From: Convolutriloba macropyga
Taxonomy: Eukaryota
Length of the DNA: 64,000 bases
Assembly: GCF_964194025.1 (NCBI RefSeq)
Contig: NC_134468.1
Span: forward strand, 73,904,001-73,968,000
Direction: 5' to 3'
Part shown: one piece after another, positions 11,853-61,145 of the stretch
How positions within the stretch are numbered: position 1 is the stretch's first letter
Layout of the letters: the number at the start of each line of letters is the position of its first letter
The notes under the pieces: model-generated
Told to the model about the DNA's origin: nothing
The model's input: the letters and a program-made list of their open reading frames with translations, nothing else
Database searches by the model: none
Translations under genes and position numbers: made by a program

Positions 11853-11964
11853 GTAAGTAGTAAATAGTTTTATTTAATGCCTATTAACAGTTATACTCTT
11901 TGAAAGCTAAATAAAAGTGTAAGGAACATGGAGCTCATGGTGGAAATAATGGAGCACATAAATT

Positions 11965-12420: not shown

Positions 12421-12471
12421 ATGCAAGAAATATTTTAAAGGTTAGCGTATAATCTGCTATTTCAGATTAGA

Positions 12472-27400: not shown

Positions 27401-28956
27401 TTTTCGAAAATGTTTTTCGAAAACAGCCGACACAATTATGCGAAGAGATCCTCAAAACAAAAAGAGTAAGTTCATTTTAAAAGAAACCCGCAAGTACAAA
27501 AGGATACAACATCAATTTTAAAATCTGAACAATGGCGCTGGACGATTCACTCTCGAACGAAAGCCAGAGGTGTGGAGGGTTTGAATGTAGCTTACTTGCG
27601 AGAGCAGGTGCAATGCCACTACCGGCTTCAAATAGGAGCTTCTAGGCCATTAAATGATTGTCATTTTTTTTAGGTTTTTCCGGCCGCATGAGTCAAGTAA
27701 CCTCGTTGGCACTATTTTGTTAAAGTTTGCTAAAATTTGAAATTGCTAAATCTATCCTCTCTAAACCGTGGATAGCTACTGACGAAACCAACGGTTCGCC
27801 GGTCGTTTGAGAGCAATTTACCCGGCGTTGGCTGGTTATGTTTAATTGCTCTCAAACAATGTTTGCAGCAATTATATTAGACATGTGGCCTTTTTAAATA
27901 CGATTTTTCGCTCGGCTGATTTTTCATCTGACCTTTATCACTTTTTGATCTCGAAAATGGGATAAACAGGTAGCGCCCAGAGGGCATTAAGTTCGCATAG
28001 GGCTTTCCAGCTGACTAATCTCCAAGTATGCGATTCACAGAAACCGCTTTGGAGACGTATACTCATGGTGTGAAGGGTGGTTCTTGACCCCCAATCCCAA
28101 TCCCAACCCCTTCACATCATTCAGACCGTCCTCTTAATCCCCTTTCCCACTCTAGCACCTCATTCCCGTAGCATTCACTCCCTGTAACCCCGAGCACTCA
28201 CTCCCCACCCGCGCTCACCACCCCTCCCCCACCTCAAATAAGCATAAGCTAAATTTAGCCTCCATAAGCCGCGCAGCTACCTACTGACAATCCAACTGCA
28301 GTTGACCGCTACATGCCTTAGTGGCTCGTGCGAATTGACTTGAATCTATTCGTTTCTGATCTACTGTCCTGTTGATGTATTGTCATAGCACCCTTCCGGT
28401 GAAAATCTGGGTATAAATTTGCCATTTTTCCTTGGAAAGGACTAAATTTAGTTTCCAAGTGAAATCTCTTCGACTTGATCACGCGTCCGTCTTTTCAAGC
28501 AACAGTTTTTTTGTCAATTCAAAAGCTTTACGATCAAAATAAACAGGTTTTACGTGAAATTCAATTTCTTTTAACGGAAAACTGTCAAATTTCTATATGG
28601 ATATTCTTGCTAAGTACTTTGGCAGGATTAAGAACAATTATAGTTCTGAACTTTTACTTATGTTAACACGATTTGATCTGGTACTGTTGAACGATTCTCG
28701 ATTTTTATTAAGTGTTTCCGTGATGTACATGCATCATTTGAGTTAATTTTTGTCTAAATTTAAGGACTACCTTAAGTTGGGCCCATTAGAATTGAAGATG
28801 TTGCAAATAGTGGGCAATCAAATTCCCATTCGCTCTCCTACCCCACCCACACAAGAAGAGTTGGAACTACAAGCTTACAACCCAGACGACTGGCCAGTGA
28901 CTCATAAAATGCTTCAAAATATCAAAATATCCAAGCGGAATCTTTGCAGTCAATAA
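12472..28956 (+). CDS. CCDC83: Coiled-coil domain-containing protein 83-like; exons 12472-12575, 12647-12731, 12806-12974, 19160-19327, 21529-21697, 23252-23365, 24525-25039, 25283-25380, 28765-28956 (537 aa as assembled; about 607 aa ending at 29174 if the 8-bp duplication is removed)
   Basis: All introns are GT-AG and phase-compatible. The spliced protein (…EAILAYQINIKEQ…ERNLKLKDEQLGHL…WLKQEAIRYRAEVERLEEEVRSLEQHNLHLMSKLFDCRMEDLNISRKFFLTQ…DYLKLGPLELKMLQI…) is collinear with vertebrate CCDC83 as I recall it (EALLDYQ, RNSRLKEEQ, WLKKE, CRLVDLKIPRRLYLTQ, DYVNLGPLGVKLM). Confidence 0.85.
13016..13290 (+). mobile_element. LINE 3' end fragment with (CTA)n tail, in CCDC83 intron 3
   Basis: Peptide NFWTRTARLMN…PCTWRILPLCGSC…*, then a short UTR and ctactactacta. 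Confidence 0.7.
13300..18140 (+). mobile_element. Near full-length decayed L2/CR1-group LINE: ORF1 (PHD finger), ORF2 (APE endonuclease + RT), downstream SGNH-like ORF, ctactacta end
   Basis: PHD CATCHKVAHLKCAG…WNCLDC (14043-14131). ORF1 end FWPSNVVHGRFF. EN motifs LLNARSL, GKGGG, GDVITMSDFDLP and PTHESGNIFDLIITN. RT motifs VPKCSILGPLLFTLY, YADDT and INPDKTEII. Three short tandem repeats (aagtcccggt) at 13850-13940 and a 45-bp in-frame duplication at 15746-15835. The 5' boundary is approximate. Confidence 0.85.
19426..20400 (+). mobile_element. Helentron-associated non-autonomous element (HINE/DINE-1-like), family A
   Basis: Shares its core (caaagaatttgaattgtattggggcgc…) with the 25754 copy. 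The 3' end is gcagctat + degraded hairpin + ctatg + T-rich run. Confidence 0.75.
21930..22950 (+). mobile_element. Decayed LINE RT fragment in CCDC83 intron 5
   Basis: AVFIDLKKALDT, VIPQGS and YLGVQIDK peptides in shifting frames. Confidence 0.65.
25701..28320 (+). mobile_element. HINE family B: copy 25701-27840 (interrupted by the family A copy) followed directly by a second copy from 27844
   Basis: 5' AATT(G/A)CTCTC-aaacgaagtttgt-AGCAATT inverted repeat. 3' subTIR GAGAGCAATT (27809-27818) + imperfect hairpin + tatg-ttt. Shared core ataaacaggtagcgcccag. Confidence 0.8.
25754..26746 (+). mobile_element. HINE/DINE-1-like element, family A, complete copy
   Basis: 5' TTTT-ATAGCTGCG…CGAAGCTAT inverted repeat and internal (CT)n at ~26476. 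3' subTIR CAGCTAT, hairpin CCGGCAatcTGCCGG (26727-26741), then a T-run. No target-site duplication. Confidence 0.85.
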
Positions 28957-29442
28957 GGAATCACGACAGTGATGCGACCAGTACAGTTGGAAAGAACACG
29001 TCAATGAACGAGAAAGATACAAGCATGACTAATGCGAATCCAGTCGCCACTGCTACTGCGAGCACTATGAGCAAGACCCAAGTCAGGGAGACTGATGGAT
29101 CAGTCGCCAGCTACCGTACCAGTCAGCAGTTGACAACCAACAGTCTTTCCGTGAACAAAATGCCAGCTTTGTAAACTTGAAATCAAACTTCATCCTTCAG
29201 AGATTCCATTGTTAATTTACTGCCTAATTTCATGTATCATACTTAGTGTACATTTGAGTCTGATTGTCTAAAATTGTAAATATGTATAAATTAGATGAAT
29301 CAAATTGCAATTTGTTGCTTTTCGAATTAATGTCAGTTCGAACAAGAGTCATTGTCTCAACTCTGCATATTTCGATTTGTTGAGAACGTAGCACAATTTT
29401 TCGGGCATCTTAATATTCAGGCATCTTTTCAGATTGTTGGAA

Positions 29443-32400
29443 ATGCCAAGCAAGCACCTTAATATTGCAATAGTTTGCTCGAGCAACCAGAATAGGAGCA
29501 TGGAGGCTCATTCTTTTCTTAGCAAAAAAGGATTCATGGTGAAATCTTTTGGCGTTGGAACAGCAGTAAAATTACCGGGTCCCAGCTCGGATAAGCCAAA
29601 TATTTACGATTTTTCAACTACGTACGACGAAATGTACAAAGATCTGTTCAGCCGAGATCCGCACTTGTACACTCAAAATGGAATCCTGCACATGTTAGAT
29701 CGCAATAGACGAATTAAACCGAAGCCAGAACAATTCCAAAAATGTTATGAGCATTTTGATTTAGTGATTACTTGTGAAGAGAGAATTTTTGATGAAGTTG
29801 TACTTGAGCTACTGCGAAGGGAGCAAACAGAATACAGAGCGTTACCTTGTCATGTGATCAACATTGATATCAGCGATAATCAGGTACCTGGAATTAAACA
29901 TCTATACTTAAGTTGACGACATATACGTTTTTGACTAGAGAAGATTTTTCAAAGCCGGACGGAAAGCGATAGCTGGGGGCTATTATTGGACTTACATTTT
30001 AACGTTTTTTTACGACTCGAAGAGTAGTATTGTTTTTCTTGAGGTTTCTACGACTCGAAGAGGATTATTGGTTTTACTGCGGTTTTTTAAACTGGAAGTA
30101 CTATTTATTCAGACGGCATTTTGACCTAAAAGCGAAAATGATAAAAATTTTGTGTGTGAAATATTTTTTTTCTGAGCGCGAGAACTTTTTTGTATGCAAA
30201 ATTTTGCTAGACCGTTTATGCGCTTTTTATGCGCCCCTGAACTGAATTAAATTGCCCGCTTGTCGTTCGGGAGCAATTCGTCCGACATGTGGGTTTATTT
30301 TTTCAATGGTGTAAAAACTTATTTTAAATTGCTCTTTTCAAATGGTATATTTTTAAAATGTGCTAATTAACGTGTTTAACTTCAAAGCAAAATTTTTGTC
30401 CATCTGTTGCAATTGTTTAAATTTTAATTGCCGCTCTCACCTCAGCCGGCTATTATATCGAGCATTTTTTACAATGCAATGTATTTAGATTGAATTGGTG
30501 CGCTGTCTTTTGTCCTGAGTGGTAGAGACAGCGAAAAAGAGCAGGATTGAAGAGTGATTTTTTCCAAAGTACCTTTGAAGTGGAGTGAGAAAGTAGAATT
30601 TCACCAAATTTTCGTTTTTGGTTTTTGAAAGTTTTTTTACGTGCGGCAATGACTTCTTTTTTTAATTACTAACAAACGAAGTTTGTAGCAATTATATTAG
30701 TCCTGTCGGTCTTCGATTATGTGATTTGTTGCTTGACCGATTTCTCGCCTGACGCTTTTGACTTTTCGTCCACAAAAACGAGATAAACAGGTAGCGCCCA
30801 GCGGGCATTAAGTGCTCTTAGAGCCTTTCAGCTCTGTTTCAGTTCAAACTGTTTTGGAGACATGGTGTGAAGGGCGGGGCATGGAGGTTGAAGACCCCTA
30901 CACTGTTGCCCCCACTATCCCCCCCCCCTCATCAGCCCTCGGTGACCCCCCCCCCCCCCCCCCGTTTCTAGCTACTGACGAACAACCGCTCGCTAAAGAC
31001 ACGCAAATTTTAAATATTGCAATTTCTCAAGCTTTTTGAATTTTTTTATTATTTTAAAAATCAGCCTTAGGTATCAAGGAACCTCCTCTTGGTTTTAATA
31101 ATAGATTACTGCATAGTTTCTTGTGGTAATGGAATGGTTTCAACATTTTAGCATCACGAATTTTTGCCTTTTTTAACAAAGCGTGTATTTTCCAATTTTA
31201 TTTTTCCTCTCATTTTATTTTATTTTTCCTTATTCAGGTCTTTCCAGACCCAGGGGCCAGGAAACATCCTAACGGGTTTGATAATAAGTTACTGACAAAT
31301 TTTTATTGGCCGTGGAATAGTTTTTCAACTTTTTAATGTCAGTTTTTTTGAGAAATTTTGGTTTTTTCAAGTTTTTTTTTCGAAATTTGTCTTATTTTGG
31401 TTTTTCAGCCTCAAGAGTCAAGGAACCTCATCTAGGGTTTGAAAATAGGTTACTGTATAATTTCTAGATGTAATGGAATGTCTTGCAAGATTTTGTTTAA
31501 CATCACGAATTTTAGCATTTTTCGACAATTTTTGCCATTTTTTTAAATTTTCATTGACATTTATAGAATTATTCACGTGAGCCTCACGGGTCAGAAAATC
31601 TCCGTTAGGGTTTTATTTTTTACTTGTCAAAATTTGTTGGTCAAGGATTATTTTTCAACATTTTTTATCAAAAGTTTTCGCATTTTATTATATATTGCAA
31701 TTTTTAAGGTTTTTTAGCCTTAAGAACAACGGAACTACCTCTAGGGTTTGATAATATCTTACTGTATAGTTTATAGATGTAATGGAATGTTTTTCAAGAC
31801 TTTAATATCACAATTTTAAGCAATTTTTTTAAAATATGTTCAGTTTTTTTCCTGTTTCTTCCGGCAGCAGGGGACCTGGGATCTCCTCCAAGGTTTGATA
31901 ATAAGGTGCTGCAAAGTTTCTAGAGTTAATGGGAAGGTGATCAAGATTATTTTGACTCCAGATTCAGTCATTTTTGGGTAAAATTTTAATTTTTTTTTCT
32001 AATTTTGAAAATTTTTGTCATGTTCCAAGTTTAATGATCTTTATGAGCCTGTGAAACTATTTCAGGCTTGAAACAGGGATACCGGATAGTCTCTTGAGAC
32101 AATGAAATGGTTCTTAAGATATTAATGTCCTGTATTATAGCAATATTTTGTTAAAATTTGCAATTTTTTCAAATTTCAAAATTTTGTGTCCTTTTCTGAG
32201 TTTAACGACCATTACTGGCCAACGAAACTTTTCAAGTCTCGGATGTGGGTTACTTGACAGAACTTTCGAGACAAAAATTGATTTTGAACATTTTTACTGT
32301 GCAGTTGGAACCTTTTTTAATTTTGGCTTTTTCAGTTTTTGCTTTATTTGCTAACAAGGCCAGAAAACTAGAAGATCCTGAGTCGAATCCCATCATGGAA

Positions 32401-32488
32401 AATATTCCTATTTCTTTCTCTCTCTGTCGGTTAGGGTTTCTTTCCCTCTTTTTCTCCTTCACGTTTTATCTCTCTCTCACACACACTA

Positions 32489-32530
<42 letters not shown>

Positions 32531-35500
32531 GATGCCGAACTTCAGCTACTGTTATGTGGCGTAATGTCATCATCTATGATCCTCATTAACAATGAGTAGA
32601 AATGTTCTTATCAAAAATGACTTAACAGGCAGTTTTTAGGAAATCATTGTTAGTTGCTCTCAAAAGCAATTTGTAACGAATATATTAATGCTGTTTGTAT
32701 CTTATGCAATTTTTCGCTCGACCGATTTTTCGTCTGACCCATTTGACTATCGTCTTCAGAAACGGGATAAAGAGATAGCGCCCAGTTTGCTTTAAGTGCT
32801 TTTAGAGCCGCTCATCGCACTAGTCTTCAAGTAGGCGATTAACAGAAACTGTTTTTTTTGTATGAAGGGCGGTTCTGGAATTTGATCCCACACCCCCATC
32901 CACTCACCGCCCCATTATCAGTCCCCACAATCCACTTTTGCACCCTCTCTGCGGTGCAACCTCGCTGCGCTCACCTTTCGCCCCTTCAATTAGTCTAAAG
33001 CTAGCCTCACTAAACCGTGGCTAGCTACTGCAGAAGCCAACCGGTCGTTAAAGAGCAATTCGCCCGACGTTAGTCGGTTATGTTCAGCGTTTCTCCTCCG
33101 GAGTGCTTTTAATATAATATTTATGCGTTCTAATTGCGCATAGTTGCAAATGCTTGAATTCATCAATGGGAAGCTAAGACTTTTTATGGCCTTGACCTCA
33201 ATTGTCTAAATTACTTAGCAAGTTTAATGACCGGTCAGAAAGTTCATTTTATATCAATGAATTAAGCTCAATTGAATATCCGGTTTTCGCGCCTTTTTTG
33301 TTTGTCTTATCATTTTCTTGTGCGGTGATGTTTTAACGAAAAGGCTGACTTCAGTTTTAGTCTATTATTTTTACTGAGTGAGATGACTTTCGTTTTCGAA
33401 ATGTCAATGTGAATTTTTGAATCTTGCCTTCATTTGGAGTTCTGTTTTCCTTCAACCATTAGAAATGCTTTGTAACCATGAGAAATGCTTTTTAACTTTT
33501 CTGGAAATGTATTTTGTGACTTCTTAAGTTTTAATGTTTCTTTTAGTGAGGGGCTTTGTCATTTAGTTCTGTGGTTTTGTTACTTTGACGCGACTGACTT
33601 CTCAAAAAATTTCTAATATTTTGCCTAGTCTTAAGTTTTGACTCCTTTTTGGTTTGTCAACCATTGATCCGCACACGGTTATTTTTCTGCGTACTCGTTT
33701 GTAGTGTCAATGATGTTTTAAAGTGTTGTTTTTTCCTGATTCTTCAAACTCTAGATCTTCTAACAACTGCTTTTGATTTTTTTCAAAATTTTGCTCATGT
33801 AGAGTCAGTGGCGTAATTGTCTATCTCAGTTTGACGTTGCTGTAAAGATGATAATTTTCAGGTCATTAGGCCATTCAAATGTTTAGATTCTACTTCAAAG
33901 CTTGTCGTGCTAATGTAACTTTGATGAATGAAAAAATGATAGCGTGTTTGATAGCTTGTTCAACCGTTTGATCTTAGTTGATTGTTAAGGTAAATGTTTT
34001 ACCTTAGTTGACAGCTTATTCAACATTTTGCGTGAAATCTTTGACTTCTCTAGGCTAATTTTTAGGTCATTAGGCCATTCACTTTTTTAGATTCTACTTC
34101 AAAGCTTGTGCTATGCTAGTGTAACTTGGTTGAATGAAAAAATGATAGCGTGGTTGATAGCTTGTTCGACCGTTTTACCTTAGTTGATAGTTAAGGTAAA
34201 TGTTTTACCTTAGTTGACAGCTTGTTCAACATTTTGCGTGAAATCTTTGACTTCTCTAGGCTAGTTTCACTCATCTGAAAGGGCTTTTCAACGGCAATTG
34301 CTGTGCAGAGCAGTCTAAAATACTCAGAATCAATGCCAAAAAACGAAATCAAAAACAAGAACGTGATAAACGCATTAAGCCAATTTTTAAATGCCCTCTA
34401 CTTGAACTTCGTTTTATTTACATTATCTGATGCGTTTTGGTATTGATACCAGCCACTGTATCATCTCATCAAAAGGCAAATATATGTCTGACAACGAAAT
34501 GAAATCAAAATAGCTTGCAATCGGGGTTCAGGTATTCAGTGGAGGTAATGATAATTTGGTTTTTGTAGAAATATTTTTTCGCGACTCTGATTCAATATTT
34601 AAGCATCTGGAAGTGCTTTTTAGTGTTTATGGGATCCTAATCATGCGTTTCTAGAGCAAAATCCGCTCATTTCACTATTTTTAGGTAATTTTTTGCGTTT
34701 CTTTCAATTTCTTTTATTTTTTAATCATTGGGCGACTTTTTTGTAATCAATGTACATGGTAACACAATTTTGATAATTCAGGCATTAAGTATCTTTTTAA
34801 TGTTAGGTGTTTTGTTACATAACAGTGTACACTTACTTATCCGAATAAAAAGGTCCAATTCTTCATCCAATTTTTTTTGTTTTGGTTTGATTTTGTAGAA
34901 TCAATTTTTCTTTGCTTGTTTGGGGGATTTTAATACCATGTACTTGATGAGCTAAATGGTTTTTGGCGTTAAGTATTCGGAATTCAATAAAATTTTTTTC
35001 ATAATTGCAATTTTAACAAGATTTTCACATTTAAAATATTCAATGATTCAAATCTTGAATTCTGTTTTTAATATTTTGTTTTGACAGGTCGATTAAGTAA
35101 TTTTATTCAATTGTCATTTCTTAGCAATGAAATGTACTTGTTTTTCTACTTACGTTGTATCAAGTTGTTTTTCAACTTCCAAATTAAGAGATATGAAGTT
35201 GCCTTTTTCTATTTTGTTCAATGTGACCGTACAATATACAGATTCTGTTTATTTGGCGCCTTATCGTCTCGAAATATCAATGCTGACTTTTTGCCATTAC
35301 CTTTTATTTTAATTCGCTGAGCCTTTATGAGTTCGTTTGAAGGTTCCGCTTTTTAAAATTTTCTTCAAGTTTTTGTTTGCAGTGATTTTCTTTTTCTTTG
35401 TAGTTGACGATGCAGCTGTCATTTTGTGATCATTTTTGAATCATATTTATGAATCTTTTGACTAATGGTTTTTTGTGATTTTTGTTGGGGCTGTATTTTT

Positions 35501-38500
35501 TATCGATTTTTGGCCTTTGAGTTTTAAACTTGATTTTTTTCTGATAAGTTTACTACAGCTTGATTTCAAGTTAAGAAAAACATCTCAAGCACGAGAAAAG
35601 CATATGTATGTTTTAAATTACTGTGGTGGCATAACAAAAATTTCTGTCTCTTGAAACCCAAATTTTTGTACTCATTTTTGCAAATCCTTTCATTTTCTAA
35701 AAATGCTATCTGCCTTATGTTTCTAAATGTGTCTTCTGAGTTGCAGAGTTAAAGGCTCCCGCACTTTTGATACCATATTTTTCGTTAAAGATATTTTGCT
35801 CTGTCAGTTTGTTGAGCCCATTAATATTTGTCCACCTTCGGTTTTTTGCTATTTTTCCAATTTCCCGGATGTTTCTAAGATTAACAGATTTCAGATTTTT
35901 TAGTGAGTTTCGGACAAAATCTTGTCTGCTCAAGATTTAAGTATATGATTTTTTTTGCGTTGTTGCTGGATACGATTTAATTGTTTGTTTGTTTGCTTGC
36001 TTCGATGATATGTCAATGCTATATGAAATTTTTTCTAGTTACGACAGGTCTTGCAATTTTTACCAATTTTGCAAGTTCCTTCTTGCTAAGCAAAGAATAA
36101 ACTGTTTTCCGACAAAAGATAATGATTTTGGGTAGAATTAGGATTTTTGGGGATGTTCCGACGCTTTGATTAGTTTCCGGAGCTTTTCTGGTTTTGTTTT
36201 CTGATTGGAATACTACTCGTTTGGGCGGCGTTTTGACCTGATAGCTAAAGTGAGTAAAATTGCCATGTTAACTAATTTTTCTGAGCGGGAGACGTTTTTT
36301 GTTCGTCCTGTACGTTGAATAGTTGACTGTTTGACTTTGAAATTTTTTTAAAGATATGCTGAGTAAAGATATGGATAATTGTTTCTGGTTGTTTTTCGAT
36401 CATTTGGCTGACCATTTTTTTAAATTTACTGTTGTTTTTTCTTTTTCCAGTTTTTATGATCGATTTTTTTCTAGTGGGTTTACTAATCATTTCATCTAGT
36501 CATGTCTAAGTCTAGTTTTTTGGTTTTTCAATAAAATTTTTTTAATTGTAGTTCTGGATTGGTCTTGCTATTTTTCATAATTTTTTTGTTCGGCCATAAG
36601 TCACGGTTAATTGAAATCTGCTTTTTTCTTTCGTGCAACTTGAATTTAATTGTCTGTTTGATGTCAATTTTCGCTCATACTGGAGCAAATTTTTTTGTTG
36701 TGCATTCAAGTGATTAAATTCTTGTTCATATGAGACAATGCGCTCTCAAAAATGAGTTCCTGACTTTTGAATTGGTTTTTGATTTCTTTAATTGAAGGTG
36801 ATGAGGTCAAGGAGGGATTTTTTACTCTAATTGAAGATTATTTAACGGAAGAAAGTAGACACAAAACGTAACTTATGCAGATTGCTCTAAATCAAAATAT
36901 CAGATCTGTGCAATTAGTTAGAAAAAATTGTATCTCAGTTCTACGACACTATGGGATATTTTTCCAGTTATCTTGCAGCTATGTTCATGACTAATACGCT
37001 CAGTAAAGTTATCTTTAGACATCTTTTATGAATTGTGGCTTACAGTTTTGCTATTTTCTATTAATTTCATTGAATTTTTTTCTGGTTCAATGTGTAATTG
37101 TAACAGGCAGGATTGGTAGTGTGCGCGCTCACTCAGCCATAATTTTGTTATTAATAGCCGCCCTCAATCTTCTCAGCCGGCTATTATTGCGTTCCTATTT
37201 TTTTAAAGTTCAAAGAATTTGAATTGTATTGGGGCGCTGTCTTTTTTTTAAGATCTGTTCACACATTTTCATGATTTTTGAAGTCAAATTGGAGTAGTGA
37301 TTTTGGACACGCCGAAGCAGGAAGTGGAGCGAAAAAGCGAGTGGTTTTGCGGCGTGAAATTTTTTCGCTCTAATTTTAAAGTAGAGTGAGAAAACGGCGT
37401 TTGAACAATAATTCGCTTTCTCGCTTGTGGTTTTTTGTTCACATGCGACAATTTCATTTTGAGGTTTTTTCTAAATTGTTTTTCGGAACCATTCATAAAC
37501 CGTTCTAGGTCTAGTTTTCTGTTTAGTCAATGAAAATTCTTTGAATTGTACGTCAGGACTTGTCCTGCTATGTTTTTTTTACTTCGTCGAACATTTTTTT
37601 CGCTTCCATTTTGCCTCTTGTTTGACATTTTGCGGCTTTTTCGAAATGTTTTTGACTTCTCTAGGCTAGTTTCATTCTTCTGTCATTCTTCTCGAAGTCC
37701 TTTTAAACAGCAGCTGCTCAGCAAAGCAATTCAAAATGAAGAGAGTCAGTATAAAAAATCAAAGTCAGAAATAGAAACGGGATAAACCCATAAAGCCCAT
37801 TTTAGATGCCCGGTACTTAAACTTTGTTCTCATAAGTTTTAGTTACTATCTATAATGCTTATTGGTATCGATACTAGACCCTGTAGCCTCTCACTGAGAG
37901 ATAAGAGTATGTTCAATTACGAAATGAAATCAAAATAAATAGCACTTAAAAATGCTTTTATACAAAAATCAATTTTTGTTGATATTTTCTTTTCTTTCAA
38001 TCCAAATAGAGTTATGGGAATCAACGGCGGCTTTTTTTCCGGCAATCTGCCGGGTATGTTATTTTGTTTTAGGCGTAAATGGTGCAATTCAGGCTGGTGA
38101 CGCCCATAGATAAATGTACTTTTTCTTTACCTATGAACAGATTACTGATAACGGTATCGAAAGTAATTAATATGGGATTTATTTTTCTGATCGGCTGATA
38201 ACGATTCATCAATTAAAGCAATTATTTTCTACGATTAGATTTAAAAATGACTGGATTTGCGTTAAAATTGTTCTGCCTTCATCAAAAATTGAAAGATAAA
38301 CTAGAAAAAGATTTTTTTGATCATTTTTTTACTTGTCGATCGACAAGATGAAGTTTTAATGGTTTATTCAGGTGGCGGAGCAATTATGCTTTGAATTACA
38401 TTTAGCCGAATTGCGCTCGTCGCTAACACGGAGTTAAATTAAGATCAGGAAATATAAATAATTGTTTTTGAAAGAAAAGTCCTCATTTTCTCAATGTTCC

Positions 38501-41500
38501 TGTTTTTGTTTAAATTTAATTTAATTTTATCAAGTAAGGTTCCTTTTAAAACTAACTGGAGACATTGTGTAGAAAAACAGGGTCAATCAGTAGTGCACAA
38601 AGAGAAAATCGCACTTCGAAGCACTCTATTGTGAAACAAAAAAACCAATAACAAAATTTCATTCTTTCATTAGCTAAATTTGAATTCCTTGAAAATATAT
38701 GCAGGTTGCTCTTGTTCGTGCTAGTGTTGTTAAGAATGGCTTGGTACTTTAGTTGTTTGTATTTCTTTCAACAGAAAAATCATTGAAAACTTTTTTCGCA
38801 TTTCGATTTTTTCAATGATAGATGTTAGCTGTTTATCATAGGTGTCTTTTAAAATCGGGAAATGTTACAAAACGAGCGGAAAAAATGCACTGCATGTCTC
38901 TTTTAAAATTGCATATTTGGATTTTATTGGTAATCCAGCTGTTGATATCACCCTTTTTCTCCCCGTTCCTATTTTCCATTATTAAAAAATAAGTCCAATC
39001 AAATCGTTGATGTTCTCTCCTTTTAAATAGAGCTAAAATGGATTCTATTTTTCTGGAGATGATTGCAAAAATAATCAGTTCCCATATTAAAATTCGAATT
39101 CCAAACTGGTAGTGCAGTACTTTAATTCACACTATAGTTTTCTTTTGAGAAGTTTTATGAAAATTTAACTTTTAGCGGGATTTTTTTAAAAGATATAATA
39201 AAATGGCTACAGTTAAATAGTTCGTTTTCTTCAGAAACAAGTACAGTATTCAAACATATTTATCTGAAAGAAATGCAAAAAGGACTTCGGGGATCATTTA
39301 ATTTTGGACATCTAAGCATCTGCTGTGAAAATGGAAAATTTCAAATGTAAACCTCATTTTTTCGTCGAGAACTGGAAAAAATTGGAAATGTCTCCTCGAT
39401 GACCAATTCAGTTTTTCAAGGTCTTTTCAATGATTCCTTTTGTTGATCTGCGGAACAGATTTCGATCGGTCAACAAAACCAAACAAGAAAGCCAGATAGA
39501 ATAATTTCCCCCAAATGAAATTGCGATTTTAACATTTATTGTTCCGACCCACTTTAGTAGGGGAGGAACTATATACTCAAACGTTTTTTTGTTGTTCAGA
39601 CAATTTTCGCCGATCGATATATTCATCGTAGAGGGTTGTGAGTGGTATCATTAGAAAGCTGTCCAGCGTAGACTGTAGAATTAAAAAGATTTTTTAATTT
39701 TCGTTTTTTAAAGAGAGTTACAGTGGTTTAAAAATTTGAGAATAGTAGGCGGAAATCCATTGTCTTATTTACATTTTCACTATTTTTGACAAAAATTTTT
39801 GTCAATTATGCTAAAATTTGTGAAAATTGTTATTAGCAATGTCACTGAATTCAGTAAAAATATGACTAAAGGTTTCCTGAATTTCGTTTTTTTCCACACA
39901 GTTATCGTGGTTTAAAGTTTTGCGAACGTTTGACTGATTTTCGTTGTTGCTTTTCACCTTTCCGTATTTTTATGCAATTGTTTTTGCCAATTTTGCTTAA
40001 AAAATTTAAGATTGGTAAAAATAGTGTTGTTCGTTTTACCTCTAAAAACATTGGCGTTTTTCAACCGTTTAGTTCAAGTTGTTGGCAAATAATCCATATC
40101 CATAATATTTGGAACAATAAAGTGTTTCCAATAGACGAACGGCAACAGCCAAGCTAGTTTTAGTGTGATCGTTGTTTCCTAAATTCGAAAGAATTGATTG
40201 TAATCAGTCGACGTTTTTTTAAATATATTCGCTTTTCCCCATTTTCGTTAATTACGAAAACTTATACCAAAACGAACGAAAGACAAACTAACTGGTTTCC
40301 TTCTTAGGGGGTCTCAGGGAAACCTATTTCGCCTTTTAGTAGAAAGCTTACGGTCGTTTTGACTTTTAAAAATCCACCTTTTGAAATGAACAATGATTTA
40401 TTGAGCTTTGCGACTTCCTTCTCTTTTTGTAGCCAACTTCTTGCTTTAAGGTCAGAAAACACAGATGATATGATTTCCTAATTGATTAATAATATAATAC
40501 TTACTGCGATTTTACGTTATAAGTGATCATTGCTTTGATACTACAAATTTTCGTAAAAATTTACATTTTTTGGCTATTTTCCCATCATTCGGGTTCTTTT
40601 TACGTTCTTGTCACATTATTGACATTTCAGGTGTCACGTTCTGGGCATTTTAAAGAAAAACTTTTCTTCTGATCGGTTGTTCCACGAACAGATTTTTGTT
40701 TTAACTGCTTCGACTCTGTCTTCTAGAAGAATATAACAGATTTTTTGGTTTTCGGTTGCTATTTGCCAATCTTTTTGTAGTCCTTTGACAAATTCTAGAT
40801 AATTGCAGATGTTAGCTTCTTCCTATGGTTGAAAAAAGGAGCCTGTTTGCTGATTATACTTAATTGCTAAAGTTTTTCATGACTTTGAAATCAAATGTTT
40901 GAAAAAAAGTTTACAGATGTTTTTTTTAATTCACATTTTGCTGTTTTATTGCCAAATTGTTACCGACTCTCAATTAATACAGGCTGCTAATAAAAATTAT
41001 TGATGATGAAGAAATGCAAAATTCAACATGTGGCATTTTTTGATGCATCGCTTATTGTTTCAACGGCCTCGATACAGGTTTTGCAAAAGAGTATGTTGTT
41101 TTTTGAGTTTCGTTTGTGTTTGGAGTTCTTCGTGAAGTCGAATGAGAAACACTGCATAGTTGCAGGTCATAGCGGCTTACTCTGAAAGAACTGTTTTTTG
41201 AATCATTTGATAGCTAAAGATTTTCATGAATTTGGAATCCAAATGTTTAAGAAGATATAAAAAGATGTATTTTTTTAAAATTTGGAATTGGTTGTATTTT
41301 GACTACATGTTGTCTAGTCTCCTTAACTACAACTTGCAATCGAATTATTGGTTGAAGAAAACACAATTGAGCAAATCTCAGGTTTTTTATGCAGTGCTCA
41401 TTGTTTTACGCCTTCAATACCAGTTTTTTGCAAAATATTTTTTGGTTTTTGTCTATTTTTTGTTATTTCTGTAGATGTATGACGTATTAAGATTAACGGC

Positions 41501-44500
41501 AGTTCCCAATGCTTTTTTAAGAAATAAACAACTCTCTTCAGTGATTTCGTTCCTATCTAATTCTTTGATGACTTTGAAATTAACAGTTTTCAAAAAATTA
41601 TTGAGATAAATGTAGTTTTAAACTTTTTTTTTAAAACTTACTACCCACTCTCATTACTCAGCGGTCACATATCTCTCATTTCATTTGGGTTATAAAGAAT
41701 ATGCAGTTGACTGTATTCTATATTTTACTGATTATATGGTTTTAAGGGCTTCCTCGTCGTTTTATTGCAAAATTTAACAGAATTTTTTTTATTTTTCATC
41801 TAACCTTTTTATTGATATTTGTAGACATGCGACATATTCTAGAAACTGACAGGTCTCAGTGACATTTTTTTTGTAAGAATTAAATTAAAGTTGAAGTTAG
41901 GAATTGGTATCCATTGGAATTCATTGAATTATTTGTTTTCGAGAAGTGAAACTTTTTTTGGTAACTTCGTCTTGTTCTTTTTTGTCTGCTTGTTACCGAG
42001 TGTCATGAAAGACTGGTCCCGTGTTTTTTTAGCAAAAACCGAGCTAGTTTTGTTTAAAATATAGGTGTTATTTGAAACGGAAGCTTTCTTTTTTACTTTG
42101 TTGTTAATTAGTTTTTTCTTCAAAAAAATTGAGTTTTGGATATAAATGCTTGCTGTTGTTATTTGATTTTTGTTTGTCTTGTCTTGTAGTCTCATTAATG
42201 GCAATTCGCATTGGCTCACTAACGCGGCATTTTTTACTTTATTAAGTATTTGAATTGGAGGCTTTTTTTATTCATACACCAATTATTGATGATCAATGTG
42301 TGCGAATTTTTGAAAGTTTTTTATCTCTTCTTCATTTGTTCGACAGTTCAGCCAAACTTGTGGATATGCGGGGTCGGAACCTTATGTGCGAACGCACATT
42401 ACGGAGCCTCCTTGTCTAATTTAGTAATTAGACCTCAGAAACTTGACATTAAAAGCTATCTAATTTGGCATTCAGGATTTTCTGTTTATTTTTCAAATGA
42501 TAGATTACTTCTTTGTTTTATGGTTCTTTTCTTTATGAGCTCTTTCTCTTTAAAAATCTGAGAAATAGTAGGTTCTGTTCCAATTTTTTTCTGATAGATT
42601 GTTGGTAATTTTTTGCTCAATGTTTTCTGCCAAGTTATGTCAGTTGCAACTTCATAGTTCTTGGAAAGTAAAACGCAAAGATTTGGACAAATTGAGCTGA
42701 CTGGGAATTTTTTTCATTTTTTGCTTTTCTAAGAATTTTACTCATCATTGTTAAAAAGGTAGACTTTCTGGTTTCAGTTTTTAAGGATATGAACTTATTT
42801 TCGCCCAATAATTAATCAGGAAACTTGTTGCCGAGTTTCATGAAAGACTGATCCCTTGCTTTTTTGCAAAAACCAAGCTAGTTTGTTTAAAATATAGGTT
42901 TTATTTGAAACTTTAGCTTTCTTTTTTTTTACTTTATTATTAATTAGTTTTTTTCTTCAAAAAAATTGAGTTTTGGATATAAATGCTTGCTGTTGTTATT
43001 TGATTTTTTTGTCTTGTCTCGTAGTCTTTTAATGGCATTTTTCATTTGCTCACTAACGCGGCATTTTTTACTTTATTAAGTATTGGAGGCATTTTTTATT
43101 CATACGCCAATTATTGTTGATCAATATATGCAAATTTTTGAAAGTTTTTTTACTCTTCCTCATTTATTCGACAGTTCAGCCAAACTTGTGGATATGCGGG
43201 GTCGGAACCTTATGTGCGGGCGCACATTACGGAGCCTCGTTGTCTAATTTAGTAATTAGACCTCAGAAACTTAACAATAAAAGTATCTAATTAGGCATTC
43301 AGGATTTTCGGTTTATTTTTCAAATGGTAATGATTACTTCTTTCTTTTATGTTTGTTATCTTTATGAGCTCTTTCTCTTTAAAATCTGAGAAATAGTAAA
43401 TTCTGTTCCATTTTTTTCTAATTGATTGTTGGAAATTTTCTGCTCAATTTTTGCTGACAAGTTATGTCAGTTGCAACTTCATAGTTCTTGGATAGTGAAA
43501 CACAAAGATTTCGACAAATTGAGCTGACTGTGTTTTTTTCTTTCTCATTTTTTGCTTTTCGCAAACAGGCTAGTTTTAATTGTGGATCCTGTGAGAGGGA
43601 ACTTGAATTAAACGTTTGCCGGTTATTTGCTAATTTAACTCTTAAATTAAGCAACATGCATCATTTATGTTTTATATTTTTGTCAAATAATCCATATCCA
43701 TCATTTTTCTGCTTTGATACTACAAATTTTTGTAAACTTTACAATTTTTGCACATTTTCCCATCATTCGGGTTATTTTTACGTTCTTGTCACATTATTGA
43801 CATTTCAGGTGCCACATTCTGGGCATTTTAAAGAAAAACAATTTTGAACTGATCGGTTGTTCCACGAACAGATTATTGTTTTTAACTGCTTCGACTCTGT
43901 CTTCTAAAAGATTTTAAAAGATTTTTTTTTGTTTTTCGGTCGCTATTTGCCAATCTTTTTGTAGTCCTTTGAAAAATTCTAGATAATTGCAGATGTTCGC
44001 GTCTTCCTATGGTTGAACAGAGGAACCTGTTTGCTGATTATACTTAATTGCTAAAGTTTTTCATGACTTTCAAATCAAACGTTCGAAAAAAAGTATATAG
44101 ATGTTTTTTTACTTTCACATTTTGCTCTTTTTTTGCCAACTTGTTACCGACTCTCAATTAATACAGGCTGCTAATTAAAATTATTGATGACGACGAAAGG
44201 CAAAATTCTACATGTGGCATTTTTTATTCATCGCTTTTTGTTTCTACGGCCGCAATACAGGTTTTCCAAAAGAGTAAGTTGTTTTTTGAGTTTCGTTTAT
44301 GTTTGGAGTTCATCGTGAAGTCGAATGAGAAACACTGCATGATTGTAGGTCATAGGGTCTTGCTCTGAAAGAACTGTTTGTTGAATCAATTGATAGCTAA
44401 TGTTTTTCATGAATATGGAATCAAATGTTTTAGAAGATATAAAAAGATGTATTTTTTAAATTTGGATTTGAATGTTTTTTAACTACATGTTATCTAGTCT

Positions 44501-46334
44501 CCTTAACTACAACTTGCAGATCCAATTATTGGTTTAAGAAAACACAAATGAGCAATTCTATGGTTTATGATGCAGTGCTGATTGTTTTACGCCTTGAATA
44601 CTAGTTTTTGCAAAATATTTAGTTTTTGATTTTTGTCTACTTATCGTTATTTTTGTAGATGTATGACGTATTAAGATTAATGGCGGTTCGCAATACGTTT
44701 TAAGGAAATAAGCAACTCTGTTCAGTGATTTTGTTCCTGTCTAATTATTAACAGCTTTCGAAAATTTATATAAATTTATTTTTAAACTTCGCCTTTTTTC
44801 TTATTTTAAAACTTGTTACCCACTCTCATTATTCAGCGGTCACAAATCTCACAATTGGGTTCTATAGAAGACGCAGTTGACTATATTCTAATTTTTACTG
44901 TTTATATGGTTTTAACGGCTTCCTTGCCGTTTTATTGCAAAATTTAACAGAATTTTTTTCATTTTTCATCTAACCTTTTTGTTGATATTTGTAGACATGC
45001 GACATATTCTAGAAACTGACAGGTCTCAACGACCTTTTTTTAGTAAGAACGAAAATAAAATTGAAGTTTAGAATTGGTATCCAATGGATTTCATTGAATT
45101 ATTTGTTTTCGAGAAGTTGAACTTTTTTTGCTAACTTCGTCTTGTTCTTTTTTGTCTGCTTGTTACCGAGTGTCATGAAAGACTGGTCCCGTGTTTTTTT
45201 AGCAAAAACCAAGCTAGTTTGTTTAAAATATAGGTATTATTTGAAACTGAAGCTTTCTTTTTTACTTTGTTGTTAATTAGTTTTTTCTTCAAAAAAAAAA
45301 TTGAGTTTTGGATGTAAATGCTTACTGTTTTTATTTGATTTTTTATTGTTTATCTTGTCGCGTAGTCTTATTAATGGCATTTTTATTGGCTCACTAACGC
45401 GGCATTTTTTACTTTATTAAGTGTTTGAATTGGAGGCATTTTTTTATTCATACACCAATTATTGTTGATCAATATATGCGAATTTTTGAAAGTTTTCTAT
45501 CTCTTCCTCATTTGTTCGACAGTTCAGCCAAACTTGTGGATATGCGGGGTCGGAACCGTATGTGCGAACGCACAATACGGAGCCTCCTTGTCTAATTTGG
45601 TATTTAGACCTCAGAAACTTAACATTAAAAGCTATCTAATTTGGCATTCAGGTTTTTTCTGTTTATTTTGCAAATGATAGATTACTTCTTTCTTTTATGT
45701 TTGCTTTCTTTATGAGCTCTTTCTCTTTAAAAATCTGAGAAATAGTAGGTTCTGTTCCAATTTTTTTTCTAATTGATTGTTGGAAATTTTCTGCTCAATG
45801 TTTTCTGCCAAGTTATGTCAGTTGCAACTTCATAGTTCTTGGAAAGTAAAACGCAAAGGTTTGGACAAATTGAGCTGACTGGGTATTTTTTTCTTTCTCA
45901 TTTTTTGCTTTTCTAAGAATTTTACTTATCATTGTTAAAAAGATTAATTTTTTCTGGTTTCATTTTTTAAGGATATGAACTTATTTTTGTCCAATAATTA
46001 ATCAAATTTTGCAGACAACTCAAAACCAGAGATTACTCAGGATTTGCACAAGCTCATACTATGCCTCTATTTTATTTGTTTAGCTGTTGTTTTGTTGAAG
46101 TAAATTGTTATGGCGATTGCGTCCTTATCACAATCAACTTTGATATGACGATAAGAAATAACGTTTTATATAATACTGTTTCAGGAAGATGCAACCATCG
46201 GTGCTTTCATGATTTGCGACCTTTGCTCAATGATGGAGGCGTCGGAGGACCTGGACTGCGACATAGAGAACATCTTACAAGCCTTTGAAACCAAGTCTAG
46301 AAGAAGTGTGCTACATGATATTTTATTCGCTTAG
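29443..46334 (+). CDS. SSU72: RNA polymerase II CTD phosphatase SSU72; exons 29443-29883 and 46185-46334 (196 aa)
   Basis: Catalytic CX5R motif VCSSNQNRSMEAH, plus KLPGP, QNGILHMLDRNRRIK and TCEER. A phase-0 intron (CAG|gtacc…tttcag|GAA) joins the conserved C-terminus EDATIGAFMICDLC…LHDILFA*. Confidence 0.95.
30664..33082 (+). mobile_element. HINE family B composite (two starts, ~30664 and ~32653) with internal ~160-bp tandem subrepeats and (CT)n
   Basis: Same 5' inverted repeat and core. 3' AGAGCAATT + CCGACgttaGTCGG hairpin at 33052-33077. (CT)n at ~32495-32527. Confidence 0.75.
33855..34265. repeat. Direct tandem duplication, ~205-bp unit x2
   Basis: aggtcattaggccattca…tgacttctctaggcta occurs at ~33860 and ~34064. 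Confidence 0.9.
37153..38058 (+). mobile_element. HINE family C, complete copy
   Basis: 5' AATAGCCGCC…CGGCTATT. 3' GGCGGCT + CCGGCAATCTGCCGG hairpin + T-rich run. The core is shared with family A. Confidence 0.75.
40530..46005. repeat. Tandem segmental duplication in the SSU72 intron (offset ~3.18 kb; an ~0.73 kb part is present three times)
   Basis: 40530-42818 matches 43710-46004. 'cgacagttcagccaaacttgtggatatgcggggtcggaacc' occurs at 42341, 43169 and 45517. Confidence 0.9.
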
Positions 46335-46841
46335 CTCAAACCGTGATCCAAGTTAAGCTTTCTCCCCATATGCTGTTTGTTTATAATGTAAATTATAATT
46401 TGTGTCAGAGACATGTGCTGGTTTATACTCTTAAAAGCGGCTTAAAGTTTTCATTGCTCTTTGAGGTTGCTGAACTGGAGATGGACATATATGGGCTTCG
46501 TTAATCAAGTAAACTTTTTAAGCTAATAGATTACCGAAGTTGTGAACTTAATTTGTAATTGTGGTAGCACTGAACTGAATTTATTTTTTCAAGATATACG
46601 ATTTTAAGTCGAGTGTATTTAAATGTTTTAACTTGCTCAAACTGGTCGACCATTGGCAAGTGTTTTTTGCATTCACTTCTTTAAAAACTGATTAGTTGCA
46701 TCGTTACAATCTTCAGATGAATTCAGTTTTTTCAACTTTACGATTGAACTCTTTTTAAATGCTTTCATTTATTTTAAAAGTTAATTGCTATGAATGCACT
46801 TAATTTTCAGTTGAGGTCAGTACTGACCTTTATGAAGCATA

Positions 46842-47156
46842 ATGTCAACACCGTACAGAAGAAATATGGCAAGACTGAGTGCGAAAATATTTAATAATGC
46901 AACGCCGCTGTCAGTGAACTCGGAGACTGTTCAGAGAATGACAGAGCAGTTGACAGTGAAGCCATACGAGTTGGACAAGAAGTTCATTAACTACTACCCT
47001 CCGTTCAAAGAGATGACACTTCTGACCAGATATCTGCGCATTTTGGGACTCTACAGAGATGAGCATTTAGATTTCAAGGAGGAAATTATCAGATCGCAAG
47101 CGGCAAGGGGAAAAGTGAAGCCTAAGAAAGGAGAGGGCAAAGGGAAGAAAGCTTGA
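46842..47156 (+). CDS. MRPS33: Mitochondrial small ribosomal subunit protein mS33 (104 aa, intronless CDS)
   Basis: Motifs MARLSAKIF, YYPP, LRILGLYRDEHLDFKEE and RGKVKPKKGEGK are typical of mS33. AATAAA at 47255-47260. Confidence 0.92.
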   Translation: MSTPYRRNMARLSAKIFNNATPLSVNSETVQRMTEQLTVKPYELDKKFINYYPPFKEMTLLTRYLRILGLYRDEHLDFKEEIIRSQAARGKVKPKKGEGKGKKA

Positions 47157-47501
47157 CATCTTTTAAAACTTTTTTCTGATTAAAACAAATGATTTGTATT
47201 ATTTTAACTTGAAGTTAACCTCTTGGCGATCAAATTTTATGAAAACTTTTCTCTAATAAATACATAATGGTATAAATGTTAGCCGTTATGACCTAGGTCA
47301 TTATCACTGCGTATGGCATTGTTTGATAGTTGAGACTGAAATCGGTTTGTCCTCTTTGTAAATCTGAACGCTGTGTGACCGTGCAATCTGGCTTGCTATT
47401 TGATTCCCCGTGTGAAACAAGTTGGTTTGTAATTCAGAAAGCATTGCTATCTATGTGAAATCAGTATTTCAAAATTTGTGTACAATTTTCAGTTTATTGT
47501 T

Positions 47502-50500
47502 ATGGAACCTACGCCTACTGCCAGGGAATTGAGGCAGACGTCAAACCTCATGTACGGCTGCTTTGCGGCCACTGAAGTGTTAGGCCTTGTAGCTGTAGTT
47601 CTGGTGGTCTACTGGGGTGCCAAAGAGCTAGGTGGATTCGCGTGGGATGGCACTGGTCTGCAGTTCAACTGGCACCCTGTGCTGATGGTGATAGCATTCG
47701 GATTCTTGATGGGCAATTCGATAGTCATCTATAGAGTGCTCTATTTCGTAAGTTCTTTTCACAGTATTTTTCGTAGTATGTTTCGATAGGATGCTGGAAG
47801 AAAAACATTAAATATCTCAGCGCAAATTCAACATTTTTCGACTCTGATCCCGCAGCAAGCAGTCATGTTGACATACGTCAATAATTAAAATTCTGCATTA
47901 AAATTAAATTTTGCACATGCGATTTCATCAATTTTTTGTGGCAAAATAGAGGTCAGTGTTTGCTGAAATGCTCTTGTATTGATCATTTCTCAGTTTCTGT
48001 GGACTCATTCGAAGTTCTTAGCAACGGCGTTGTTCTGTAATGCAAATATTAGGGTTAAGTTTATCTTGTATTCATATTTTAAGAAGTAACGATATTTTCC
48101 TGTTCTAGATGGATAAGTTGGTTGTTAAAGTGACTCACACCATTCTGCACGTGGCGAGTCTCATTCTGATCATCTTAGCTCTCTACGCTGTTATCAACAA
48201 CCACAATGAGTCGAACATTGCCAACATGTATTCTCTCCACAGTTGGATTGGCATCACAACCTGTGCTCTCTTCTTCTTTCAATTTTCCCTCGGTTTCGCC
48301 GCATACGCATTTCCTCAGGTTAGATTGAACAGCAATCCGTTTTTGCAAAAAAAAAATTTGAAAAAGAAGGAATTCATTTTTCTTCTATCATTTCATAAAA
48401 TATTCGCCATTGTTAGTTGACATCGCCATCCATACCTTTACAAAACCAATTATCAAGGGGAATGTGGACAAGGTCTTAAATATCACAAAATAGTTTTCGT
48501 GCAAAATATGCCAATCAATTTGAAAGAGCCATTTCGAATTTCTTTTGTTTATTTTTTTGAGTATGGGCCTAGAGGGGTGGTCTTGGATCACAGAAGAAGT
48601 TGACAATAAGTAGAAGGTATCAAAATTTTATAAACTCCATAGACACTTTCAGGATGGATTTCGAAAAATGCCTTATGTTAGCTCTTGCACCATAAAAAAT
48701 CCTGTGATTACAAAAGATTAAGGAGGCAACATGTTATTTAAAATGCATAAACGATAGGTTAAAATTCACATATTCACAACTAATCACCAGTAAGTATCCA
48801 TTCAATTTTAGAGAGGCACTTTTTGCTGGTTCTCTGTGCTTTTTGTAAACAGATTTAAATATTTGCGTTGTTCTTAGATTGTGCTCTATGTTAAGCAGTT
48901 TGAAACACTCCTAGAACATTTGAATGGTCCCCAAGATCTCATGTCAGCCTTCAATTTCATTAGGATACTTGATGAGATAAACGATTTAGATCGCTGGGCC
49001 GGGTCTTTCATTTGATCTGAAGTGTGCTGACTGGACGGGAATTCTTTATTTTTTAATTTATCGATTTATGTGTTATCTTTTTGGCTGTTAATGTTTGTAG
49101 CAATTTTTCAAATGAAGGAATAGTGACAACACGATTGATCTATAAACGCTATTTCAAACTGTACAAGCTCATTCTGTACAAGATTCGAATATCAAATAAC
49201 TGCGGCCTTTTTGAATAAGAATGTGTGTTCTCGTGAATATCAAATGTTTATATTTTAATCAATTTAGATTAACGAAAATGCCGGTGGCAGTGAGCAGTGT
49301 TGAGTTTTGTAGTTTTGAGTTTACGAACAATATTGGTTTTTGTTTAGATTTACTGGCTAAATATAGAACTGCTGGATTTGATTTCAGCTTCCGCTGAGTT
49401 TTGTTCAAACACTTTTGTTTCCATTAATTTTTCTTTTTGAAACTTTTTTCCGTGTACCAAATCGGCTAGATAAAAGCGTATTCGAACTGATAAATTTGAA
49501 CCTCTCATTTTAGTGACAACTTTTCAAAAGATTACCTTGGCATGTTTCTCAATGCATTGAGTTCAATTACGGAGAAATTAGTGGAAAATATAATTCCATG
49601 GTGGCGGCGAAATACTGAAATTGCTCGCTATCTCATTTTGAGCTGTTTTAGGTGAGTTGAAGCTAAGCGCCTCTTGATATTAGTAATGCTCCTTTTTTGA
49701 CATACAAAGCTCATATAGCTTAGTGATTATGGTGCCTGACTCTTACGACGTCAGAATTCTTATGTTTCATTGATTAATAGCCGCCGTTGGACTCTCAAAG
49801 GTTATTATTTCGGTGCTCTCCTTTTGCATCTTTTCAAAGAGTTTGAATTGTTCTGGGGTTCTTTCTCTTTTAAGATCTGTTCACACATTTTGTCAATTTT
49901 TGAGTTGTGATTTCGGTCACACCGAAACAGGAATTGGTCGAAACAGGAACAAAGATTTTTTGGTATTGTTTCTAAATGCTTTTCGGAGCCAATCCCTAGT
50001 TGTTTTTAGTTCTAGTTGTTTGTACTCAATGAAAGTTTTTTTTTAGTTCAGGACTTTTAAATTGATTTACCTTTTGATCACGTTTTTCGTTTTACAAAAT
50101 TGGCGACTTTCCTTTCATTTGTGTCTTACCTCATTTACTGTAGTTTCAAATGAATGAAATTTAGAATTCATTCAGTTGATTTATGCCAGTATGTTCAGGG
50201 TCCAAGAGAGAAATAGTATGAAACTAATAAAGACCGGACGCTACGACTTAATGTTTAAGGACTTGGTGCAATATGTTATCAAAACTCCTGAGATTATGCT
50301 GCTAATTGGTATTAGTGTAAGTCTTATTGACCTCCAATATAGAAGCTGAATTTACTGTTTTAATCCTAACTTCGGGTAGTGGGGTCAAAGGCGGCTATTT
50401 TCCATCAATCTGCCGGCTATGTTAATCTATTCTAGCATCGGCTGGATAGATTTTCAAAACTTGCCAAACGTTTGTGTCGCAGACATGGGACCAAAGTTTG

Positions 50501-60827: not shown

Positions 60828-61145
60828 TTTTCATAACTCAACAGCTCTAATTGTACGGTATAATTTTATATGATGGTCTATTTGCGTTCTATTCGTGCGC
60901 TGTATGTCTGCTGCTACTATAACTATAGTCTTAACGCTTTGTTGCAATGCTTATCCAGCTATTTGTATGCTATCTTTAATTTGTCATGCTCCTTTTTTCA
61001 GTTTATGTGTACGCAGCTGCTGTATCCCTATTTTATGGACTTTGTAAGTTTGTTTAAATGAATTCTGAAAGCTGAAATTATTTTCAGATGAACTCTGTCA
61101 TGGTAGAAACATGTGACTACTTTTGAATAAATAAATCTGCCGGAA

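Follow-up and report, generated by a model that had tools for sequence, protein, structure and literature searches.

Trans-splicing is a well-known means of resolving operon transcripts in nematodes, tunicates, chaetognaths and flatworms, and both spliced-leader (SL) trans-splicing and operons have a patchy distribution across the animals, whether they arose or were kept where they are found. A row of five genes in the acoel Convolutriloba macropyga has several features that fit such an SL-resolved operon, and this row is the subject of the present analysis. It lies in a stretch of 64,000 nt, referred to below as the window (assembly GCF_964194025.1, contig NC_134468.1, positions 73,904,001 to 73,968,000 of the forward strand), and consists of genes for a CCDC83-like protein, SSU72, MRPS33, cytochrome b561 and PP2A B56 (PPP2R5), all of which are on the + strand. 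The features in question, which concern the first four genes, are co-oriented and functionally unrelated genes, short and unique spacers between them, an acceptor for each cistron and a conserved gene order. Judging from the sequence, we estimate the probability that at least SSU72 and MRPS33 share a polycistronic transcript, and so form an operon proper, at about 0.48.

The first comparison to be made is with the SL2-type operons of Caenorhabditis elegans. As in that nematode, the co-oriented genes are unrelated to each other and include mitochondrial and RNA-processing ones, the spacers are short and an acceptor is located before each downstream start. The two predicted distances from a cleavage site to the acceptor, about 120 and about 215 nt, are a further likeness. 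Two differences exist, however. An equivalent of the SL2 leader for downstream cistrons was not seen here, no search having been aimed at one, and the C. macropyga genes have repeat-filled introns of up to 16 kb, which would make the candidate unit >35 kb long according to the layout of the sequence.

The polycistrons of Ciona, Oikopleura, Schistosoma and Macrostomum rely on a single SL class, which serves both the monocistronic genes and the downstream cistrons, and the array described here can be likened to them in this respect. The intercistronic regions of tunicates are nearly absent, whereas the spacers in C. macropyga have hundreds of nucleotides. In the chaetognath Paraspadella gotoi, operons were called from distances of <250 bp between gene models together with SL evidence, and the leader genes are in rDNA clusters (PMC12460157). 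The linkage of the C. macropyga SL genes with 5S rRNA resembles the latter arrangement, whereas the spacing differs, as the distances here are 268-507 nt from coding sequence (CDS) to CDS.

The closest described system is that of another acoel, Symsagittifera roscoffensis (PMC9911081), which has the same leader, multicopy SL RNA genes and the same four genes (CCDC83-like to cytochrome b561) in the same order. Its leader is GCCTAATTGTTGTGATAAACTTATTAAATAGA (32 nt; Martinez et al. 2022, G3; PMC9911081), and 30.2% of its genes, about 10,000, are trans-spliced; the paper makes no mention of operons or polycistronic units. A literature search found no SL report for Convolutriloba and no paper that links operons or polycistrons with acoels.

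Genes, spacers and gene order

The gene names proposed in an earlier note on this DNA hold up, and all of the stops, acceptors and start codons that it listed agree with a direct reading of the window (Table 1). Pfam matches support SSU72 (Ssu72, 1.7e-66), MRPS33 (MRP-S33, 1.6e-16), cytochrome b561 (Cytochrom_B561, 5.5e-6 and 4e-23) and B56. The two SSU72 exons, which are separated by a 16.3-kb intron filled with repeats, translate exactly, when joined, to the C. macropyga protein XP_075249969.1 of NCBI (196 aa). Cytochrome b561 would be a protein of about 249 aa, with probable exons 2 and 3 at 48109-48318 and 52462-52752; its inner exon boundaries are predicted ones. The CCDC83-like gene begins with coding exons at about 12473-12576 and 12647-12732 and has conserved exons near 19.1, 21.5, 23.2 and 24.5 kb. 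Because its conserved C-terminal exon matches a Lingula protein called 'CCDC83-like' (E 6e-6), the label is a reasonable one; a search of a protein atlas with this exon gave no usable match.

All three spacers are single-copy in the C. macropyga assembly that was used for the genome-wide counts (1,175,981,408 bases or 1.18 Gb in 4,694 scaffolds; genome note PMC13650328), whereas an 800-nt piece of the SSU72 intron has >2,400 first-look candidate copies there. Within the window itself, repeats cover 73-100% of the region from 40 to 46 kb and 0% of the spacers. These results bear out the contrast between repeat-free spacers and repeat-filled introns that had been drawn from the letters of the window. 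The spacer lengths given at that time, about 510 and about 345 nt, stand for spacers 2 and 3, but the value of about 270 nt for spacer 1 holds on the other haplotype only.

The last CCDC83 exon of the window has an 8-bp tandem duplication (TCAAAATA twice, 28914-28929) that shifts the reading frame; the frame that enters at 28768 then stops at 28954-28956, and about 72 aa of poorly conserved sequence are thereby lost from the C-terminus. Because CCDC83 ends at 28956 in this version, the spacer is 486 nt long here, as compared with about 270 nt. A second, independent C. macropyga assembly (L028) is without the duplication, and its CCDC83 reads to the stop equivalent to 29172-29174, as in the orthologues. 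The duplication is probably a segregating allele or a difference between assembly haplotypes. A mini-intron at 28897-28949 was considered as another cause of the frame change and was ruled out, since L028 reads straight through this region.

Table 1. Positions of the genes, spacers and acceptors in the window (position 1 is its first nucleotide)
Feature	Position	Strand	Details
CCDC83 acceptor	12458..12466	+	ctatttcag; 6-7 nt before ATG 12473; probable SL trans-splice site
CCDC83-like gene	12473..29174	+	ATG 12473; last exon from about 28765; ancestral stop TAA 29172-29174
Spacer 1, CCDC83-SSU72	28957..29442	+	486 nt in this haplotype; about 270 (268) nt in the other haplotype
SSU72 acceptor	29425..29432	+	cttttcag; 10 nt before ATG 29443
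SSU72	29443..46334	+	exon 1 29443-29883; exon 2 46185-46334; TAG 46332-46334
Spacer 2, SSU72-MRPS33	46335..46841	+	507 nt
MRPS33 acceptor	46803..46810	+	attttcag; 31 nt before ATG 46842
MRPS33 (mS33)	46842..47156	+	single exon, 104 aa; stop 47154-47156
Spacer 3, MRPS33-cytochrome b561	47157..47501	+	345 nt
Cytochrome b561 acceptor	47485..47492	+	attttcag; 9 nt before ATG 47502
Cytochrome b561	47502..52752	+	exon 1 47502-47750; GTAAGT donor 47751; stop 52750-52752
PP2A B56, gene start	61002..62093	+	acceptor 61001; ATG 61146; Pfam B56 at 4.7e-61

Spacer 1 has TATAAA at about 29286, and since S. roscoffensis has AATAAA in the same place, this is a possible poly(A) signal. Spacer 3 has AATAAA at 47255, and it is in this spacer that the predicted cleavage site is about 215 nt before the acceptor.

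Gene order was compared among contigs that were chosen as carriers of MRPS33 or SSU72 relatives. They include two loci of S. roscoffensis (L017, from the chromosome record GCA_963678635.1, and L010, from an ENA assembly and 96% identical to L017), loci from two acoel-like assemblies that are more divergent (L011 on the one hand and the haplotigs L012/L013 on the other) and a Tara metagenome scaffold (L014). The identity of L011 and L012/L013 to the window is 66% for MRPS33, about 91-92% for SSU72 (exon 1 residues 1-100 plus exon 2) and 38% for ATXN10.

The order and orientation of CCDC83, SSU72 and MRPS33 are kept in all four of the full loci. For example, the NCBI gene calls for S. roscoffensis place a 677-aa gene, SSU72, MRPS33 and cytochrome b561 on one strand in that order, with CDS-to-CDS spacers of 324, 310 and 487 nt. 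The presence of cytochrome b561 after MRPS33 is shared with Symsagittifera only among the acoels compared. It is absent from the two distant assemblies. The gene next to MRPS33 is ATXN10-like there; it is separated from MRPS33 by 160-346 nt (10316-10661 in L012/L013 and 10313-10472 in L011), and an acceptor precedes its ATG by 5-6 nt. The C. macropyga orthologue of this gene is on the same chromosome, 18.7 Mb from the array (G000:C1:55216711-55217892), and has TTTCAG 9 nt before its ATG. One tentative interpretation, which we regard as a little short of an even bet, is that acoels have true SL-resolved operons and that the CCDC83-SSU72-MRPS33 unit has been kept since Convolutriloba and Symsagittifera split from at least one other acoel lineage, the last cistron having been exchanged (cytochrome b561 versus ATXN10-like).

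Acceptors and the spliced leader

The starts of CCDC83, SSU72, MRPS33 and cytochrome b561 all have TTTCAG 7-31 nt before the ATG (4/4); the background is 2.9%, this being the portion of all ATGs in the window that have TTTCAG ending 5-35 nt upstream. Similar sites occur in the other acoels. An acceptor is present 18-51 nt before the SSU72 ATG in four of four other loci, MRPS33 has a polypyrimidine-AG site 7-40 nt ahead of its start in five of five related loci, and taking both genes together, every start in the compared loci has such a site 7-51 nt upstream. The S. roscoffensis cytochrome b561 gene has ctttcag at the same distance from its ATG as the C. macropyga gene. The window and L028 differ by an 8-nt indel and a few substitutions at about 29405, which is some 30 nt before the SSU72 acceptor; the acceptor is identical in both. 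We predict that the AG just upstream of each ATG is an SL trans-splice acceptor.

The earlier note had suggested a search of the genome for an SL RNA, with a leader, a GT and an Sm site, and this search was productive. The published S. roscoffensis leader occurs 2,612 times in the C. macropyga genome (<=3 mismatches) and the reversed control 0 times; the leader followed by GT occurs 1,748 times. This would amount to well over a thousand SL RNA genes, and the leader predicted from them for Convolutriloba is exactly the Symsagittifera leader. Many of the copies with GT are in tandem arrays with units of 1.2-1.6 kb on scaffold C9 (23.1-23.8 Mb and about 62.06-62.10 Mb), and in each unit a 5S rRNA gene runs in the opposite direction, the classical SL-5S linkage. 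A unit has the make-up expected of an SL RNA gene (leader exon, GT donor, Sm-like single-stranded stretch and stem-loops); its junction reads ...AAATAG/GTAATT, and in the predicted fold the donor is in stem I and a hairpin is at the 3' end (z = -3.6). The leader ends with TTATTAAATAG. As published, it has a final A that is absent from the SL RNA gene, where the exon ends ...AATAG/GT.

Evidence that the leader is found on a messenger comes from P0155, an SSU72 protein that was predicted from a Tara Oceans metatranscriptome and that clusters with the SSU72 of the window at 90% identity. The N-terminus of P0155, AFSLIVVINLLNR, is an exact translation of the SL RNA gene and is followed by LV-MPPAKHL, so that the start in full reads MGAFSLIVVINLLNRLV-MPPAKHL. 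Within it, AFSLIVVINLLN agrees exactly with the C. macropyga SL RNA gene when that gene is translated in frame from a point 7 nt before the published leader begins up to the last base of the leader. Because this N-terminus is translated leader, the SSU72 mRNA of this closely related planktonic acoel has the leader 7 nt ahead of the ATG; it is the one mRNA on which the leader was seen. Use of the acceptor at 29432 would result in the same in-frame leader junction in C. macropyga.

The match to P0155 also takes in GCTTTTA, the 7 nt that precede the published leader, the SL RNA gene in question being L024 87-124 (G000:C9:23192686-23192723). As both the protein and the gene extend the match 7 nt in the 5' direction, the true leader is probably about 38 nt long and the published sequence 5'-truncated.

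Exact look-ups of MRPS33, of the NCBI SSU72 and of the Tara protein returned genomic contigs only or nothing, and no RNA-derived contigs. The reads of runs X1-X4 over 45750-48749 have an even depth across exons, introns and spacers, with heterozygous allelic bubbles at half depth, and these runs are therefore DNA. SSU72 and MRPS33 are single-copy in the genome, and so there are no SL-headed retrocopies of them to mark the splice sites. Two stacked leader copies, with 3 and 1 mismatches, are present in a CCDC83 intron (window 13581-13602 and 13632-13653) just upstream of a LINE-like element, an arrangement that fits SL-headed retrotransposons.

It might be argued that the sites before the start codons are ordinary cis-splice acceptors, which join upstream non-coding 5' exons to the genes and receive no leader. 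For example, a 5' exon of CCDC83 might end at the GTAAGT donor at 11855, which precedes the CCDC83 acceptor by about 610 nt. Short 5' leader exons and a 42-nt intron do occur in this genome, as B56 shows, and each of the spacers has weak GT sites. However, no GT in the spacers scores >=5/6 against MAG/GTRAGT, which agrees with the earlier observation that they have no consensus donor. The abundance of SL RNA genes, the leader on the SSU72 mRNA of the close relative and the trans-splicing of about 10,000 genes in the sister genus (PMC9911081) also speak against this explanation, and we consider it very improbable. Conversely, SL trans-splicing of the genes of the array, as the earlier note had claimed, is highly probable given the SL RNA genes, the published leader, the SL-headed SSU72 in a relative and acceptors that are conserved in five acoel assemblies.

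One transcript or several

If the array is an operon, Pol II would start upstream of CCDC83, between about 10 and 12.4 kb, and would read through the short unique spacers, which would have no promoters of their own. Each upstream cistron would be cleaved and polyadenylated within its spacer, and the downstream cistron would be capped by trans-splicing of a leader of about 31-38 nt from the SL RNA genes that are arrayed with 5S rRNA. The earlier note had placed the single promoter near 11.7-11.85 kb and had proposed a pre-mRNA of >40 kb. The ratio of observed to expected CpG is about 0.87 throughout the window, and a CpG scan for promoters was uninformative, as neither the spacers nor the region of 11.7-11.85 kb has a peak above the many intronic peaks.

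A number of observations weigh against a single transcription unit. About 30% of the S. roscoffensis genes are trans-spliced, and so an acceptor before an ATG is a mark of trans-splicing and not of an operon. A length of 270-510 nt leaves room in a spacer for a 3' untranslated region (UTR) together with a compact promoter and a short outron. In a single unit, Pol II would have to traverse two gene bodies that are about 17 kb long each and full of repeats, and the canonical AATAAA is present in neither spacer 1 nor spacer 2. The homologous junctions in two distant species are 514/1324 and 2272/1122 nt long, with an indel of about 480 nt between haplotigs, which implies that tight spacing is unnecessary for the order to persist. 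Likewise, an ABC gene is situated about 4 kb past MRPS33 in species D, whereas in C. macropyga it is found on the same strand some 195 kb downstream, which means that regional synteny persists without tight spacing.

An alternative is a tight cluster of independently transcribed genes, in which each spacer would have a compact promoter directly behind the upstream poly(A) site, each gene would lose its own short outron by SL addition and the order would be ordinary conserved microsynteny of housekeeping genes. No operons have been reported from the sister genus with its many trans-spliced genes (PMC9911081). The ATXN10-like gene of C. macropyga, which is at a separate locus, has the same acceptor-before-ATG signature as the genes of the array, the order is kept in two other acoels despite indel-polymorphic spacers of 0.5-2.3 kb, and CCDC83 is, in our view, no obvious housekeeping partner of SSU72 and MRPS33. 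However, three consecutive co-oriented spacers of <510 nt are very unlikely to occur by chance in a 1.18-Gb genome with introns of up to 16 kb. In addition, the spacers are short and repeat-free in two genera. Between Convolutriloba and Symsagittifera they have diverged to background except for about 50 nt around each acceptor, and no block other than the acceptors is conserved. We therefore regard independent compact promoters as a serious possibility, with somewhat less than an even chance of being correct and slightly less likely than an operon. The operon itself is held at about even odds because of the approximately 30% of trans-spliced genes, the long junctions in the distant species and the regional synteny without tight spacing.

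If the operon is real, acoels would be another operon-bearing phylum, and operons would persist in a transposon-rich genome of 1.2 Gb with 16-kb introns, in which case genome compaction would not be the driver. The position of the Xenacoelomorpha among the bilaterians is disputed and is possibly very deep. To split such units correctly, pipelines for the annotation of acoel genomes would have to be supplied with data on SL and poly(A) sites. Even if the genes are independently transcribed, the leader shared with Symsagittifera and its probable 7-nt 5' extension stand.

PP2A B56 and other observations

The fifth gene of the row, B56, had been put forward as a possible member of the operon, but this now appears unlikely. 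B56 starts about 8.2 kb after cytochrome b561, past repeats and masked stretches, and this distance makes its membership doubtful. It is probably a separate unit that has its own leader exon and intron: the 5' region has a 44-nt leader exon, which is followed by a 42-nt GTAAGT...TTTCAG intron (61046-61087). Because of this intron, very short introns seem to coexist with 16-kb ones in the C. macropyga genome. The B56 5' region also has a short upstream open reading frame (uORF), the ATG of which is at 61088.

The window (46832) and S. roscoffensis (9991 in L010) both have an out-of-frame ATG upstream of MRPS33, at a distance of exactly 10 nt from its start, and from its position this ATG may be that of a conserved overlapping uORF. 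Upstream of CCDC83, at about 1600-10000 of the window, a unit of about 2 kb is repeated several times in tandem, and repeats within the window cover 73-100% of the region from 2 to 8 kb. Finally, the GC skew is positive and the AT skew negative on the + strand over nearly the whole 64 kb, and the 8 kb that separate cytochrome b561 from B56 are no exception; this could be either a transcription-linked bias or a consequence of transposon orientation.

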